Sequence record: MK268344.1
Length of the DNA: 64,000 nt
Direction: 5' to 3' (one strand)
Below, piece after piece: positions 20,591-62,095 of this stretch (position 1 is its first letter; each line of letters opens with the position of its first letter). The translations under genes and the position numbers were made by a program. The notes beneath the pieces were generated by a model. That model did no database searches. It was not told where the DNA came from and saw only the letters and a program-made list of their open reading frames with translations.

Positions 20591-20974
20591 ATGAAATTGC
20601 TCGCTAAAAAAGTGGCTTCAGTACTGAATATTGAACTCAATACTGAACCGACAAAGGAAATGGGTTTCCTTAATTATGAGATTATGAGCAATAGTACTCT
20701 TAATATTGGCACTGTCCATAATAGTAAATCCAAATCATTATATATCAATGTAGGTTCATATGATTTACTATCATATAAAAAGAATGTGTTTGATGAATCA
20801 GACAAATCTTTTATCCCATCAGAAGAAGAGTACTTTATGCAAAGTACTTTGAGAGATCTTGTAATTTCTCGTGAAAAATTACAAGAACTTGAAAAATTGA
20901 TGAATGAATATAAAGATAGCGTTTGTGTTGGAATTGGACTACACGAAGAAGGATGTTATGCTACTACAGATTGA
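20591..20974 (+). CDS. hypothetical protein, EEEYFxxSTxxDL family
   Basis: SEEEYFMQSTLRDL motif shared with three other ORFs. Confidence 0.75.
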   Translation: MKLLAKKVASVLNIELNTEPTKEMGFLNYEIMSNSTLNIGTVHNSKSKSLYINVGSYDLLSYKKNVFDESDKSFIPSEEEYFMQSTLRDLVISREKLQELEKLMNEYKDSVCVGIGLHEEGCYATTD

Positions 20975-21401
20975 AGATCACATAGAAGTACCTCGTTATT
21001 ACATGTCACGATGTGAAAATGATGAACTGCTAGGATTTCTTCCAGTATTAGATCCAGACCAGCATTCATACTACACAGTAGAGAATATTTCACCATCAAG
21101 AGAATTTGATCGTGTTTCTCCCGTCTTTGGTTCATACAGTGATGTAATTACCGATTCTGAATATTGGTATCAGAAACCCATTCATAAAAATGCTCGTGAA
21201 GAAGATAAACTACAGCACGAGTACTACAGAGATGAGTTCTTAGAGCGTTTAGAAACTCACAAATACTGCGTATGGTTCGTAGGTTGTGATGATGGTGATA
21301 ACTTCATACGGTTTGAAAGCAAAGATAAAGCACTAGAATATCTTTCTAGTATTGAATATTTTGAAGAAATATATAATAATCCACACTGCCAGTTGTGGTA
21401 A
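20958..21401 (+). CDS. hypothetical protein
   Basis: AAGGA RBS before ATG 20958. Confidence 0.75.
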   Translation: MLLQIEDHIEVPRYYMSRCENDELLGFLPVLDPDQHSYYTVENISPSREFDRVSPVFGSYSDVITDSEYWYQKPIHKNAREEDKLQHEYYRDEFLERLETHKYCVWFVGCDDGDNFIRFESKDKALEYLSSIEYFEEIYNNPHCQLW

Positions 21402-21402
21402 T

Positions 21403-21429
21403 AAAAAAGCACCCATCGGGTGCTTTTTT
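21403..21429. terminator. intrinsic terminator
   Basis: AAAAAAGCACCC-ATC-GGGTGCTTTTTT. Confidence 0.9.
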
Positions 21430-21463
21430 CGTTTGTTTCTTTATTAGCCAATGTACACTTTCC

Positions 21464-21477
21464 TTGATCTAGATCAA
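21464..21477. promoter_or_regulatory. FNR-binding site
   Basis: Exact TTGAT-CTAG-ATCAA within 18-bp palindrome 21462-21479, abutting the -35 of the nrdD promoter. Confidence 0.8.
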
Positions 21478-21506
21478 GGGACAAACCGGGGTATTGGTGA
21501 TATAAT
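21478..21506 (+). promoter_or_regulatory. GGGACA-class promoter of nrdD operon
   Basis: GGGACA-N17-TATAAT with GTGA. Confidence 0.8.
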
Positions 21507-21553
21507 AATTGTGTACTATCTAAATAAATCACCACAATGACACGGAGAGTCGA

Positions 21554-23359
21554 ATGAAAAAAGATAATTTATATAATGACGTTTCTGATTTTTTAAATCA
21601 AAGCAACCAAGATTTATTAAATGAAAACGCCAATAAAGATGCAAAGATAGTCAATACACATCGTGATTTACTAGCAGGAATACTTTCTAAACATTATGCA
21701 GAAGATGTTATTTCTGAAGATTTAATGAAATGGCATACCGATGGATATGGTCACATTCATGATCTTGATTATTATATTAGTCCATTAACTAATTGTTGTT
21801 TAGTAAACTACGAAGATATGTTAGAGAATGGATTTAAAATTGGAAATGCACAAGTTGGTACTCCTAATAGCATAGGTGTTGCAAGTACAATACTAACACA
21901 AATTGTTTTAGCAGTATCTGCTAGTCAATATGGTGGACAATCATTACCACATATTGACAAAGGCTTGGAACCATATGTTGAAAAATCATATAAAAAACTT
22001 TTAAAACTTCAACAACAGTTCAATCTTAGTGATGATTTTGTAGAATATTCATTGAAAAAAGAAGTTTATGATGCAATGCAAGCATTATTATATCAAGTCA
22101 ATACAATAACATCTAGTAACGGACAAACACCTTTCGTTACTATAAGCCTAGGATTAAGCACTTCTAAATTTGGTAGAATGATAACAGATGCATATTTGGA
22201 TGTGCATGAAAAGGGATTAGGAGTTGACGGGGCAACACCAGTTTTTCCAAAAGTTGTTTTCTTTTTACAAGAAGGTATCAATATGAATAATAATGATATC
22301 AACTATGACTTGAAACAAAAAGCATTAGCATGTGCTTCTAAACGTATATACCCTGATTTTGTTTCAGTACCATTAAATTTAAAAGTTACAAAAAGTACAA
22401 GTGAAGCTGTCACACCAATGGGTTGTCGTTCATTCCTTTCTCATTGGACTGATAATAACGGACATGAAAAATATAATGGTCGATTTAATTTGGGTGTGGT
22501 TAGCATTAATCTTCCACTATTGGCCTTAGAATCATCGTCTGATGGGGATTTTTTCACTAAAGTGGATTATCACATGCAAATGGCATATCGTGCACATATG
22601 AATCGGGTTGAACGTATCAAAAACATGAAAGCCAAGCAGAACCCAATTTTATTCACCGAAGGAGTACTAGCAAGATTAAATCCAGAAGACACCATTGAAT
22701 CATTGTTCTATGATGGTTATGCAAGTATTAGTATTGGTTATGTTGGTTTAGCAGAATGCTCGGAAATTTTAAAAGGAAATATTGATAAAACTTTTTGTAA
22801 ATCAATCTTATCATATATGAAATCAAAATGTGAAGATTTCAAAGCTAAAAGTAAATTATCATTTAGTTTGTATGGAACACCAGCAGAAAGTCTATGTTAT
22901 AAATTCGCTAGAACAATTGAGAAAAAATACCCAGCAGTACTTAAACGAGATTTCATAACAAACTCATTCCACCAACCAGTATGGATTGATAGTTCTCCAT
23001 TTGAAAAATGGAATTATGAAGAAGGTTTTGCATTCTTGAGTAATGGTGGAAACATTAGCTACGTAGAAGCTCCAAATCTATCCAACAATTTAAAAGCATT
23101 AGAAACACTAGTTGATTATGCATATGAACGAGTTCCTTATTTTGGTATAAACCAACCGGTAGATCGGTGTTATGAATGCGGTTTTGAAGGTGAATTTGTA
23201 GTTGATAAAAACGGGTTCCACTGTCCGAATTGTAATAATAGAAATGACAAAACAATGTCTGTCATTAGGAGGGTTTCTGGATACCTAGGAAATCCATCTT
23301 CTAGAGGATTTAACAAAGGCAAGCAACAAGAAGTAATTCAAAGAACTAAACATATATAA
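21554..23359 (+). CDS. nrdD: anaerobic ribonucleoside-triphosphate reductase (class III)
   Basis: HIHDLDY, NCCL, MGCRS, YGTPAE, CYEC..CPNC, RRVSGYLG glycyl radical motif. Confidence 0.97.
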   Translation: MKKDNLYNDVSDFLNQSNQDLLNENANKDAKIVNTHRDLLAGILSKHYAEDVISEDLMKWHTDGYGHIHDLDYYISPLTNCCLVNYEDMLENGFKIGNAQVGTPNSIGVASTILTQIVLAVSASQYGGQSLPHIDKGLEPYVEKSYKKLLKLQQQFNLSDDFVEYSLKKEVYDAMQALLYQVNTITSSNGQTPFVTISLGLSTSKFGRMITDAYLDVHEKGLGVDGATPVFPKVVFFLQEGINMNNNDINYDLKQKALACASKRIYPDFVSVPLNLKVTKSTSEAVTPMGCRSFLSHWTDNNGHEKYNGRFNLGVVSINLPLLALESSSDGDFFTKVDYHMQMAYRAHMNRVERIKNMKAKQNPILFTEGVLARLNPEDTIESLFYDGYASISIGYVGLAECSEILKGNIDKTFCKSILSYMKSKCEDFKAKSKLSFSLYGTPAESLCYKFARTIEKKYPAVLKRDFITNSFHQPVWIDSSPFEKWNYEEGFAFLSNGGNISYVEAPNLSNNLKALETLVDYAYERVPYFGINQPVDRCYECGFEGEFVVDKNGFHCPNCNNRNDKTMSVIRRVSGYLGNPSSRGFNKGKQQEVIQRTKHI

Positions 23360-23371
23360 GAGGTAATTATT

Positions 23372-23734
23372 ATGACTATTAAAGCAAAACAAATTTTATC
23401 TGGTGAACATACTGGAACTATTCTAATTCATGATGGAGAAGTTGCACGTATTATTGTTTCAAAAACATTTTCAGAAAATGATGAAGTACTTTTGAATATT
23501 TTTGACAATGAAGAAATGCGTGATGTAATGATTGAAGAAACACCAAATGTCGAAGGCGGTCAACATTTAAATGTTAATGTGTTATCACGTGAACAATTAG
23601 AAGATGCTCAAAAACATCCTGAAAAATATCCACAACTAACTATTCGTGTTTCTGGATATGCAGTTCGTTTTAATTCCCTAACAAAAGAACAACAAGACGA
23701 TGTTATTAGTCGTACATTTACGAAATCACTATGA
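23372..23734 (+). CDS. grcA: autonomous glycyl radical cofactor
   Basis: [36 protein letters not shown]. Confidence 0.95.
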
Positions 23735-24201
23735 ATTATCAAACAATAATTAAAGATGACTTAATAAATGGGGAGGGAGTTAGATGCTCCCTTTTTGTTT
23801 CAGGATGTAGTCATGGGTGTGTAGGTTGTTTCAATGAAAAAGCATGGGATTATCGTTCAGGTCAAAAATTTAGTACTGAAACAATAGAAATCATACGAAG
23901 CGAATTATCAAAACCACATGTATCTGGTTTATCGTTACTTGGTGGTGATCCACTTATGCCAAAAAATATAAGTACTGTTATAGATTTATGCAAACTCATT
24001 AAAGATGAATTTCCAGAAAAGAATATATGGTGTTGGAGTGGTTATACATTAGATGAAATACAAAATAATCATGCAAAACCTATTTTAAAATACATTGATG
24101 TTTTAGTTGATGGGAAATATATTGATAGTGAGAAAAATCTAAAACTTCCATATCGTGGTTCTAATAACCAACGCATTTTGAAGAAAGATATAGATTATTA
24201 A
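23731..24201 (+). CDS. nrdG: anaerobic RNR activating radical-SAM enzyme
   Basis: [40 protein letters not shown]. Confidence 0.96.
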
Positions 24202-24231
24202 ATACATAGAACTATTGTTATAAAATAAACT

Positions 24232-24257
24232 AAAAGCACCCATTGGGTGCTTTTTTT
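24232..24257. terminator. intrinsic terminator
   Basis: AAAAGCACCC-ATT-GGGTGCTTTT; 24/25 identical to 21405-21429. Confidence 0.9.
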
Positions 24258-24264
24258 ATTTCCA

Positions 24265-24272
24265 TATAAATA
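24265..24272 (+). promoter_or_regulatory. T4-type late promoter
   Basis: TATAAATA before the tail-protein cluster. Confidence 0.75.
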
Positions 24273-24304
24273 CAGTATGGATACCTTTAATATAGGGATA
24301 TAAT

Positions 24305-55277: not shown

Positions 55278-55306
55278 GGGACAAAAACATGAAAATGTGA
55301 TATACT
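55278..55306 (+). promoter_or_regulatory. GGGACA-class promoter
   Basis: GGGACA-N17-TATACT with TGTGA. Confidence 0.75.
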
Positions 55307-59437: not shown

Positions 59438-62095
59438 ATGGCTGATTTATTATCACCCGGTGTAAGTGTAACCGTCACTGATGAATCGATTTCTGCACAA
59501 GCCGCACCCGGTACTGTGCCACTTTTCGTCATTGCAACTGCTCAAGACAAGCTAGTTCCCGGTAGTTCAGCTATCGCTTCTGGTACATTAAAGGCAAATG
59601 CTGGTAAGTTACAACTTATTACATCACAAAAAAACGCTCTTGATACTTTTGGAACACCAGTGTTTCAAAAACATCTAGGGTCTGTAGTTCAAGGTGATGA
59701 GCTAAACGAGTATGGCCTCCACGGTCTATACAGCTATATGGGAATTGCAAACCGTGCATATGTTGTACGTGCTGACCTTGACCTAAACCAATTAACACCA
59801 AGTGCTACTGAGCCTACTGGTGATGTACCTAACGGTACTCTATGGTTTGATACTTTTGCTTCTCAAGTTGAAGCATATGTAGCAAATGTGGAAAACCCAC
59901 AAAGTTTCTATGACTGGACTCTAAAACCAGTTCGCATTGTAAGTGCTGAATTGATTACTGATGTAAGTACTGTAGGATTAAACGTTGACGATCTAGTAAT
60001 CCGTCATGTTCCAAGTACTGGTCAAATGCTAGTTTACAAATTTGAAAGTGCTGGTCTAGTTCAGGTTGAAACCTATCTATCACCAATCAACAAAGTACCT
60101 ACTGGTACTGCTATCCATGCTGGTGATATCTGGCTACGTGATGGTTATGTGAAGAATGGTTCTAACTACTTCGGCACTCGCTTTGTAATTAAGCGTTACG
60201 CTTCCCTAACTAAAACTTGGGTTCCTGTTGATACTTTCACTGGTACAAGTTTCTATGATATTGAAGCAAAAACTGGTGTATCTAGTAATGCATATATCGC
60301 TGCACTATTCGATTGGGATAGCTATAGTTTCTCACTATACATGAAAACTGGCAACATTCCAACTATCAGTGCTTCTGCAACTCCACTAGGTCAAATTAAC
60401 CTCGATATTGCACAAGCTGATTGCTTCCTAACTATTAGCTATCTTAACAAATCTGCTAAAGTACTTGCAGTACCAAAAGGTCAAATCAAGAATGCAGAAA
60501 CTATTGTTTCTAATCTTAACAAAGTGGCAGCATTGATTAATGATGGTTTTAGTTTTAGTGTACAAAACAACGGTGTAACTATCACCAACAAACTAGGCTA
60601 TAGTTTTAAAGTAACTCAAAGTGGTGAAGCACTATTCGATGCAGCTAATATGAATAAACTATCTACTGATAGTAGTAACTATTCACAAATCAATCCACGT
60701 ATTATTCGTGTTTCTGATTCTGCACCACGCTCTACTGCGTCCGAAGGTACATACTGGTACGATTTCAGTAATTCTGATAATCTAACTGTTACTCTTTATG
60801 TAGCGAACTTAAGTACTGAAGATTGGGATAAAGTACAATCCAACAACATGTATCTACAAGTTGATGAACCTGCCGCTGACCGTGATTTCTGGGTTCTCCC
60901 ACTATCACAAGGTGTTGATGGTTATCAATTCTATCGTAATGTACGTGGTGAATGGGTTAAACTAGACCCAGCAGACCAAAGTACCCTAAACGGTATGATC
61001 TTTGAAGATTTCAACGGTGAAGTTCCAAGTGCTAACCTATATCAAAATGGTATGCTTGCAATTGATATGGGTAATACTGAGGGTGTTGTTAAGCAAATGG
61101 TTAATGGCAAATGGGTTGTTGTTAGTGGCGTAGCCATTGACGGAAGCGGTCTATTTGGTCGTCATGCACAACGTCAAATCATCGTAGAAGCACTAGCTGC
61201 TGTAATCGTGGGTAACGAAGCAATTCGTTCTGAATTCATCGATTTCAACCTAATGTGTTCACCGGGCTATGTAGAACTTCTAGATGAGTTTGTAACACTA
61301 AACACTGATCGTAAAGAAACTGCTTTCATCGTAACTGATGTTCCAGCACGTCTAACTCCAAGTGCTACTGCAATTCAAGAGTGGGCTACCAATGCTAATA
61401 ATGCACCAAGTAATGGTGATATTGGACGTACAACTGCTTATGCTTATGCAGCACAATACATGGGTTGGTGCTTAAGTACTAACGTTGATGGTGAAGAAGT
61501 TGCAGTACCGGGCAGTACTATCGCGATGCGTACCTATGCTTATAGCGACAGCGTAAGTTATGTTTGGTTCCCACCTGCTGGTACACAACGTGGCGTTGTA
61601 AGTAATGCTGCTTCTGTAGGTTACATCACTGATGAAGGTGAATATGCTCCAGTAGTATATAACAACGGTCAACGTGATACCATGTACGTTAACAAGATTA
61701 ACCCAATTGCGATGCGTCCAAGTCGTGGTCTATTAGTATTTGGTGACAAAACACTAGCTGCTGATGAAGGAAGTGCTCTAAGCCGTGTAAACGTAGCTCG
61801 TCTAGTTGTTTACATTCGTCGTCAACTAGAGATTCTAGCAGATCCATTCTTGTTCCGTCTAAACACTGCAAGTACTCGTCAAGAGTTTACGGGTGTAGTT
61901 AACAGTTTCCTAGCTGAAATTCTACAACTAAATGGTCTATATGACTTCTTAGTAGTGTGTGATGAATCAAACAACACCCCAACTCGTATCGATAGAAACG
62001 AATTGTGGATGGATATTGCGATTCAACCAGTACGTAGTATTAACTTTATCTACATTCCAATCCGTATTGAGAAAACTGCTTCAGCAGGTGCTTAA
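59438..62095 (+). CDS. tail sheath protein
   Basis: LLSPGVSVTVTDES N-terminus; WFPPAG..RG, KINPI, FGDKT, RVNVARL, CDESNNTP.RIDRNEL..IQP. Confidence 0.95.
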   Translation: MADLLSPGVSVTVTDESISAQAAPGTVPLFVIATAQDKLVPGSSAIASGTLKANAGKLQLITSQKNALDTFGTPVFQKHLGSVVQGDELNEYGLHGLYSYMGIANRAYVVRADLDLNQLTPSATEPTGDVPNGTLWFDTFASQVEAYVANVENPQSFYDWTLKPVRIVSAELITDVSTVGLNVDDLVIRHVPSTGQMLVYKFESAGLVQVETYLSPINKVPTGTAIHAGDIWLRDGYVKNGSNYFGTRFVIKRYASLTKTWVPVDTFTGTSFYDIEAKTGVSSNAYIAALFDWDSYSFSLYMKTGNIPTISASATPLGQINLDIAQADCFLTISYLNKSAKVLAVPKGQIKNAETIVSNLNKVAALINDGFSFSVQNNGVTITNKLGYSFKVTQSGEALFDAANMNKLSTDSSNYSQINPRIIRVSDSAPRSTASEGTYWYDFSNSDNLTVTLYVANLSTEDWDKVQSNNMYLQVDEPAADRDFWVLPLSQGVDGYQFYRNVRGEWVKLDPADQSTLNGMIFEDFNGEVPSANLYQNGMLAIDMGNTEGVVKQMVNGKWVVVSGVAIDGSGLFGRHAQRQIIVEALAAVIVGNEAIRSEFIDFNLMCSPGYVELLDEFVTLNTDRKETAFIVTDVPARLTPSATAIQEWATNANNAPSNGDIGRTTAYAYAAQYMGWCLSTNVDGEEVAVPGSTIAMRTYAYSDSVSYVWFPPAGTQRGVVSNAASVGYITDEGEYAPVVYNNGQRDTMYVNKINPIAMRPSRGLLVFGDKTLAADEGSALSRVNVARLVVYIRRQLEILADPFLFRLNTASTRQEFTGVVNSFLAEILQLNGLYDFLVVCDESNNTPTRIDRNELWMDIAIQPVRSINFIYIPIRIEKTASAGA

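Follow-up and report, generated by a model that had tools for sequence, protein, structure and literature searches.

A candidate class II site for host FNR on the anaerobic ribonucleotide reductase promoter of Rak2-like jumbo phages

Does a strictly lytic phage rely on the oxygen sensor of its host to control its anaerobic ribonucleotide reductase (RNR)? The question is raised by a promoter in sequence record MK268344.1, of which we analysed a stretch of 64,000 nucleotides (the window). A preliminary description had pointed to a palindrome carrying the FNR consensus next to this promoter, and had proposed that the phage reads host oxygen status through FNR to switch on an oxygen-sensitive pathway of dNTP synthesis.

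The window belongs to a strictly lytic myovirus of about 350 kb, a Rak2-like jumbo phage. Over 20900-24300 it matches Salmonella phages 7t3, SE_PL, Munch and PHA46 at 100% identity and Klebsiella phage fENko-Kae01 at 98.6%. Parts of this region also align, at ~73-81% nucleotide identity, with Rak2-like jumbo phages that are further removed, namely those of Klebsiella (Alcyoneusvirus), E. coli (Asteriusvirus), Pectobacterium (Mimasvirus CBB) and Erwinia. The identification of the gene downstream of the palindrome as an anaerobic RNR was borne out by Pfam NRDD and NCBIfam matches, and this gene is followed by a GrcA homologue and NrdG (Table 1). The phage NrdD is without an N-terminal ATP-cone, the NCBIfam profile for anaerobic RNR (PRK09263) aligning from profile position 95, and the GrcA-like protein matches the E. 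coli GrcA structure 6owr (E = 2.9e-34). Because intrinsic terminators flank the three genes, they constitute an insulated transcription unit. The upstream terminator shields the nrdD promoter from read-through, and an equivalent GCACCC...GGTGC hairpin is present in most relatives. A search of 185,579 bacterial genomes for close relatives of the phage NrdD, as a possible cellular source of gene and promoter, found none.

Table 1. Features of the nrdD locus and of sequences compared with it (window positions unless another sequence is named)
Feature	Position	Strand	Evidence or remark
Intrinsic terminator, 12-bp stem and T-run	21403-21429	+	Ends upstream gene; annotated terminator in Munch
Perfect 18-bp palindrome CCTTGATCTAGATCAAGG	21462-21479	.	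Read from sequence
FNR box core TTGATCTAGATCAA, TTGAT-CTAG-ATCAA	21464-21477	.	Centre 21470.5
GGGACAAAC, -35-like element of phage promoter class	21478-21486	+	GGGACA at 21478-21483 directly abuts box
Extended -10 TGaTATAAT	21498-21506	+	TG 21498-21499, TATAAT 21501-21506; 10/12 match with TG
TAAATAA leader motif	21521-21527	+	TAAATA invariant in 19 relatives
RBS of nrdD, GGAG	21544-21547	+	Annotated RBS in Munch
nrdD, class III (anaerobic) ribonucleoside-triphosphate reductase, 601 aa	21554-23359	+	Pfam NRDD 6.8e-165 and Gly_radical
grcA-like autonomous glycyl-radical cofactor, 120 aa	23372-23734	+	Pfam Gly_radical; TIGR04365 3e-40 (below the model's cut-off)
nrdG, radical-SAM activase of NrdD	23731-24201	+	TIGR02491 NrdG 1e-57, above cut-off; Pfam Fer4_12
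Bidirectional intrinsic terminator closing operon	24232-24254	+	Annotated in Munch
Six GGGACA promoters	3613, 13244, 21478, 38098, 48335, 55278		Window
Identity to TTTTTATTGATTTAAATCAA	L039 (E. coli grcA promoter) vs L003 2842-2860 and L066
T5-like palindrome	L016 1388-1401; L015; L041-L063, ~141 nt before match start

Inspection of the promoter confirmed the perfect 18-bp palindrome and the TTGAT-N4-ATCAA motif inside it, which fits the FNR consensus TTGATnnnnATCAA at 10/10 specified bases. The half-sites are of the FNR type (TTGA/TCAA) and not of the CRP type (GTGA), both in the window and, without variation, in 19 relatives; this half-site base tells FNR from CRP. As had been described, the box abuts the -35 hexamer: GGGACA matches TTGACA at 4/6 positions, stands 17 nt from the -10 and forms, with TGaTATAAT, the top-scoring sigma-70-like site in the region. 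TATAAT follows the box at a distance of 23 nt. With +1 predicted by spacing at the G at 21513, 7 nt after the -10, the box centre falls at -42.5, against the -42 or so given previously; here and below, centres were computed as -(19.5+n), where n is the number of nucleotides from the box to the -10 hexamer. Both the consensus and the class II position near -41.5 that had been invoked agree with the survey of Myers et al. (PMC3688515), in which 19/23 directly FNR-activated promoters have their site at -41.5 +/- 4, that of yfiD (grcA) being at -40.5 and those of ydhY and fnrS at -42.5. The phage promoter has the predicted anatomy of a class II FNR-activated promoter.

The CTAG spacer gives the box of the window two GATC (Dam) sites (21466-21469 and 21472-21475) and an XbaI site. 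This pattern is found in the window group and in the CBB group. Boxes of Alcyoneusvirus and Asteriusvirus are without the CTAG-derived GATC sites, so Dam methylation is not the conserved feature; it could modulate FNR binding at those boxes that have GATC.

The claim that the site is not a chance occurrence was supported by its placement. Two perfect FNR boxes were observed in the window versus 0.24 expected from window shuffles. Sites with at most one mismatch numbered 13 versus 8.5 expected, with no overall enrichment, and the nrdD site is the only intergenic one among these 13 in a window that is 8% intergenic. The second perfect consensus, TTGATGGTTATCAA at 60915-60928, falls within an ORF of 885 aa (59438-62095); the next gene begins 1.3 kb away, and the match is most likely due to chance. 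No perfect box was present in a further 50 kb of the same genome (7t3, 1-50 kb), the scan of 7t3 covering, with the window, 114 of 349 kb, and in each fetched Rak2-like locus with a perfect box the nrdD box was the only one.

The core promoter is itself one of a family. Exact matches to GGGACA-N15-19-TATAAT numbered five in the window versus 0.06 expected, and a sixth, looser member lies at 55278; the common form, GGGACAAAC-N9/10-TGTGATATAAT, identifies by its recurrence a genuine phage promoter family. The other five members were correctly described as devoid of an FNR site: they carry an A-rich AAAATCTT stretch where nrdD has its box, and nothing there comes closer to an FNR site than 4-5 mismatches. 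The class, as (A-rich)CTTGGGACAAAC-N9/10-TGTGATATAAT, was also seen in sequence L034 at 1374, 3393, 12516 and 30730. Canonical TTGACA-N17-TATAAT promoters are distinct from it and cluster in the early region (L034 21892-35817), and a phage-encoded sigma-70-family protein (Pfam regions 2 and 3) is encoded at L034 26691-27659. If this protein, and not host sigma-70, reads GGGACAAAC, the class II contact with sigma may not apply. A search of IMG/VR for TTGAT-N4-ATCAA-N21-23-TATAAT was uninformative, with no NrdD, GrcA or NrdG within 2.5 kb downstream among the 118 matches listed.

Conservation upstream of nrdD in related phages, which had been put forward as a check, was determined on the nrdD upstream regions of 19 distinct Rak2-like genomes or contigs, spanning phages of Salmonella, Klebsiella, E. 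coli, Pectobacterium and Erwinia together with IMG/VR contigs, and including Alcyoneusvirus, Asteriusvirus and Mimasvirus. The box was kept in 19/19 regions as TTGAT-N4-(A/G)TCAA. It was perfect in 15, and in the remaining four an A-to-G change affected the innermost base of the right half-site, the sole half-site position to vary. The 4-nt spacer, on the other hand, is variable (CTAG, CCAG, TTAA, ATAG, TTAG, TTAT), and the -35 regions are unrelated between genera (GGGACA, GAATAA, GAGAAA, TACAAA, TGAAAA). Mean column identity of the aligned region was 58%. Among its 164 columns 21 were invariant, the 14-bp box accounting for ten of them and a leader motif, described below, for six; 9/10 half-site columns were invariant versus 12/154 other columns (Fisher p = 1.4e-8). 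In 17/19 relatives a -10-like hexamer follows the box at n = 22-23, giving a predicted centre of -41.5 or -42.5, and two CBB-like contigs (L030, L031) had no good -10 hexamer at class II spacing. The relatives carry a TATAAT or TATTAT -10 without a recognisable -35. The outer CC/GG extension that makes the palindrome 18 bp long is not conserved, being replaced by T in fENko-Kae01. With half-sites fixed, the spacer free and the distance to the -10 held, the alignment makes the signature of selection on the box unusually clear.

The gene content between nrdD and nrdG differs among the relatives, and the FNR box is constant throughout. grcA occupies this interval in the window group and in Muenster, where a further small ORF follows; ph0011 and A4 have grcA and a DUF4326 gene; Hallingskeid has nothing, EC.P1 a 108-aa ORF, KP13-7 a 321-aa ORF and CBB three ORFs. 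Since the operons without grcA (EC.P1, Hallingskeid, CBB and KP13-7) still have the box, it goes with nrdD rather than with grcA.

In CBB-like phages a hairpin, (A)TACCCC-N7-GGGGTA(T) with a T-rich run behind it (-12 kcal/mol), lies between the box and the -10, at 3020-3047 in L005 and at the equivalent place in L026-L031, and is conserved. By its sequence it looks like an intrinsic terminator inside a promoter. The two arms are also similar to NarL/NarP heptamers (TACYYMT) arranged as an inverted pair, at atypical spacing.

Which protein would read the box? When 50,697 phage records were searched by tblastn with the E. coli protein FNR, no homologue was detected in Rak2-like or other enterobacterial phages, the only match being one Listeria fragment. 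Since none was detected in these phages, the reader of the box must be a host protein. FNR is established for the Salmonella, Klebsiella, Pectobacterium, Erwinia and Aeromonas hosts (in part, PMC1805755). FNR control would also fit biologically, because oxygen destroys the glycyl radical of NrdD. We propose that at low oxygen the [4Fe-4S] FNR dimer would bind the box at about -42.5, abutting the -35 region, and would recruit or activate host RNA polymerase at TGaTATAAT, so that more transcript would be made for the oxygen-labile glycyl-radical RNR, for its activase and for a spare glycyl-radical subunit. In air, FNR would be monomeric and would not bind, and the FNR input would be lost. FNR occupancy, the start site, activation as the direction of the effect and its size are what we infer here; if the late-type promoter described below acts on the operon, FNR would modulate the expression that depends on host polymerase and would not be the sole switch.

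FNR regulation of the corresponding E. coli genes, on which the preliminary description had drawn, is documented for both nrdDG and grcA (yfiD) (PMC3688515, PMC4009431, PMC1805755). E. coli nrdD has an FNR ChIP peak (PMC3688515), nrdDG is FNR-activated according to Boston and Atlung (2003) and Roca et al. (2008) as cited in PMC4009431, and Yersinia spp. and the Vibrionaceae share with E. coli the Fnr control of nrdDG (PMC1805755). In E. coli this promoter serves the same enzyme system, in the same FNR regulon, as proposed for the phage operon. Its build is different: its two boxes (TTGAGCTACATCAA and TTGATGCAAAGCAC) are imperfect and stand 31 bp apart, and it also has NrdR-box-like palindromes and a ~200-nt leader, whereas the phage promoter has one perfect, class II-spaced box and a leader of ~40 nt. 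No NrdR box was found in the phage nrdD promoter, where the best match had seven mismatches in 16 positions; the E. coli control showed its NrdR boxes and its two FNR sites.

The E. coli grcA promoter, in contrast, resembles that of the phage in having a single perfect box (TTGATTTAAATCAA) 22 nt before the -10. The nrdD promoters of Muenster and KP13-7 reproduce this box with its left flank exactly, over 20 nt (TTTTTATTGATTTAAATCAA), and a homologue of grcA, the host gene under such a promoter, is also carried in the phage operon. The likeness has limits. At -93.5 the host promoter carries a further FNR site, one that down-regulates it (Green et al. 1998, as cited in PMC1805755), and a one-mismatch box is seen 53 nt upstream in E. 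coli grcA, where the phages have none. Downstream of TTTTTATTGATTTAAATCAA, 9/22 positions match between the grcA and phage promoters (counted by eye on the alignment). Descent from the host grcA promoter was considered and rejected, as similarity ends at the box and its AT-rich left flank. Because homology stops there, we read the likeness as one of architecture, probably reached by convergence. In its arrangement of elements, the phage promoter follows the class II design of host grcA and not the design of host nrdDG.

How much would transcription of nrdD in the window phage depend on FNR? Two features bear on this question. The leader carries TAAATA(A), located 33-47 nt before the nrdD ATG across the 19 relatives (33 nt in the window). 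In the window TAAATA is under-represented in coding DNA and clusters 30-46 nt ahead of gene starts: 14/27 copies fall in the 60 nt preceding a gene start and 12/27 are intergenic, versus a background of 8%. Perfect copies of TATAAATA occur at 24265, 39761 and 57832, and the nrdD copy, cTAAATAA, agrees with it at 7/8 positions. An ATAAATA late motif and a gp55-like sigma have been described for CBB (PMC5259590). At 21521 the motif probably serves as an additional phage-specific promoter, T4-late in type and independent of FNR, and the nrdD operon probably has tandem promoters, of which FNR would control only the host-type one.

The other feature is the core promoter itself. In the window it has a consensus -10 with TG and the same GGGACAAAC as five promoters devoid of an FNR box, and it looks intrinsically strong without FNR. 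The dependence on FNR may be small in the window phage, because its core promoter is common to these five. Promoters of some relatives are built differently: that of ph0011 has neither TG nor a -35, and those of CBB-like phages have TATTAT or TATTTT without a -35. These look activator-dependent by design. Of the proposal that host FNR reads oxygen for the phage, the part that rests on consensus, spacing, conservation and the lack of a phage FNR held up as a reading of the sequence, while 'switch on' may overstate the dependence in this phage.

We then compared nrdD promoters beyond the Rak2-like group, nrdD being present in roughly 2,900 phage records. The nearest NrdD proteins are those of Phapecoctavirus-like phages (63% identity) and of Aeromonas phage 4L372XY (58%). 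In both, nrdD has its own promoter, and a one-mismatch box precedes a TAGAAT or TAAAAT hexamer: TTGATTTTCCTCAA, TTGATCCTGAACAA and TTGACTAAGATCAA in Phapecoctavirus AV125 and relatives (n = 21-22) and TTGATTTGAGTCAA in 4L372XY (n = 21). Values of 22 or 21 put the predicted box centre at -41.5 or -40.5; these centres and that of the window are all inside the -41.5 +/- 4 interval of PMC3688515. As a rough estimate from the window frequency of 0.012 per 150 nt, the presence of the TTGA-N6-TCAA core in four of about nine lineages has p ~2e-6. In T4-like (RB14), Vequintavirus (NHEP1) and Seunavirus (EspYZU14) phages nrdD lies directly behind another gene, with no intergenic promoter, and no FNR-like box was found upstream of nrdD in FelixO1-like mio or ICP1.

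Taken together, these comparisons favour the reading that the box at 21464-21477 is a functional class II activator site for host FNR on the promoter of nrdD, the grcA-like gene and nrdG, to which we assign a probability of about 0.75. A more modest role is conceivable, though improbable: FNR would bind at a promoter that is essentially constitutive here, the box either fine-tuning it or being the relic of an activator-dependent ancestor, and GGGACAAAC, the extended -10 and TAAATA would control nrdD. A core promoter with TGnTATAAT shared with five FNR-less promoters, and an invariant TAAATA that behaves as a promoter-like signal across the window, speak for such an arrangement. A relic would decay, yet the five sequenced members of the GGGACA-type sub-lineage (the window, fENko-Kae01, L006, L007 and L032) all keep the box, and within them only its spacer or innermost base changes while neighbouring bases vary, which argues for continuing selection on the box.

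The palindrome could instead be the operator of another dimeric DNA-binding protein, encoded by the phage or a non-FNR protein of the host, its likeness to an FNR box being coincidental. Palindromic operators are common in phages and most of the roughly 600 genes of this phage are without known function. Nonetheless, we give this explanation little credence: the match is 10/10, and the variation tolerated mirrors FNR recognition, with a free spacer, a variable innermost base and a fixed TTGA...TCAA. In addition, the motif recurs at like spacing in unrelated phage lineages with different gene contents, it occurs once per locus and is absent from other promoters, and no gene of the FNR/CRP family is detectable in these phages. 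That the palindrome works as a nucleic-acid structure, be it an RNA hairpin, a terminator remnant or a cruciform, or that it arose by chance, is very improbable. The 18-bp palindrome of the window does fold at -9.5 kcal/mol (z = -2.4), but its counterpart in Muenster reaches -1.4 kcal/mol, which does not exceed the stability of shuffled sequences. Close relatives have lost the outer CC/GG pairs, no T-run follows, and no compensatory changes that would preserve pairing while breaking TTGA/TCAA were seen. The reading as an RNA hairpin or terminator was dropped, hairpin stability not being conserved. Chance is opposed by 0.24 perfect boxes expected per 64 kb as compared with a box in 19/19 relatives.

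Beyond this locus, we lean towards the view that strictly lytic phages of facultative anaerobes wire their anaerobic RNR operon to FNR as a general strategy maintained by selection, extending to all Rak2-like phages, Phapecoctavirus-like phages and an Aeromonas phage, and possibly, in a weaker or differently placed form, to T5-like phages. These operons would form a virus-borne branch of the FNR regulon, in which oxygen-dependent transcription by host polymerase would be layered on an oxygen-blind late promoter, and dNTP supply and burst size in the gut would hinge on host fnr. Host regulators acting on phage genes have precedents, such as the control of cyanophage pstS by PhoB through a pho-box. 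CtrA boxes in alphaproteobacterial phages (PMC9437464) and LexA boxes in GIL01 (PMC4551915) likewise place the site of a host regulator on a phage promoter, as proposed here; what differs is that the regulator would be FNR and the signal oxygen. Host-factor sites on phage promoters are already known, and the FNR/oxygen version is unreported in the literature found: full-text searches returned no publication describing an FNR site at the nrdD promoter of a phage, no mention of FNR in papers on CBB, fENko-Kae01 and jumbo-phage biology, and no transcriptome for the Rak2-like phage group.

Among the Rak2-like phages are candidates for therapy against Salmonella, Klebsiella and E. coli, and the gut in which they act is poor in oxygen. 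Gating of nrdD by host FNR, if it occurs, would make phage DNA synthesis and yield dependent on oxygen and on the fnr status of the host, which would bear on carrying efficacy from aerated broth over to the gut. It would also provide a clean case of a strictly lytic virus sensing its environment via a global regulator of the host and not via a sensor of its own.

Three further arrangements were observed upstream of nrdD in other phages. T5-like phages have a weaker, variable FNR-like palindrome centred at ~-69.5 from a strong TTGACA/TATAAT nrdD promoter (variants TTGACTCAGATCAA, TTGACTCAGATCAT, TTGACTAAAATCAA and ATGATCCAGATCAA, with a degenerate TTAGCACAGATCAA in T5-type contigs); this palindrome could represent a class I-like site or have no meaning. 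In Vibrio phage Achelous a perfect box (TTGATCTATATCAA, L019 1128-1141) is placed 9 nt before TATAAT, where it overlaps the -35 position, a geometry unlike the class II arrangement elsewhere. Finally, in two Phapecoctavirus-like sequences (L021 and L022) a hairpin, AAAGCCAGC-TTAA-GCTGGCTTT with a T-run, lies ~60-20 nt before nrdD; this terminator-like element between the FNR-box promoter and the gene may be a leader attenuator.
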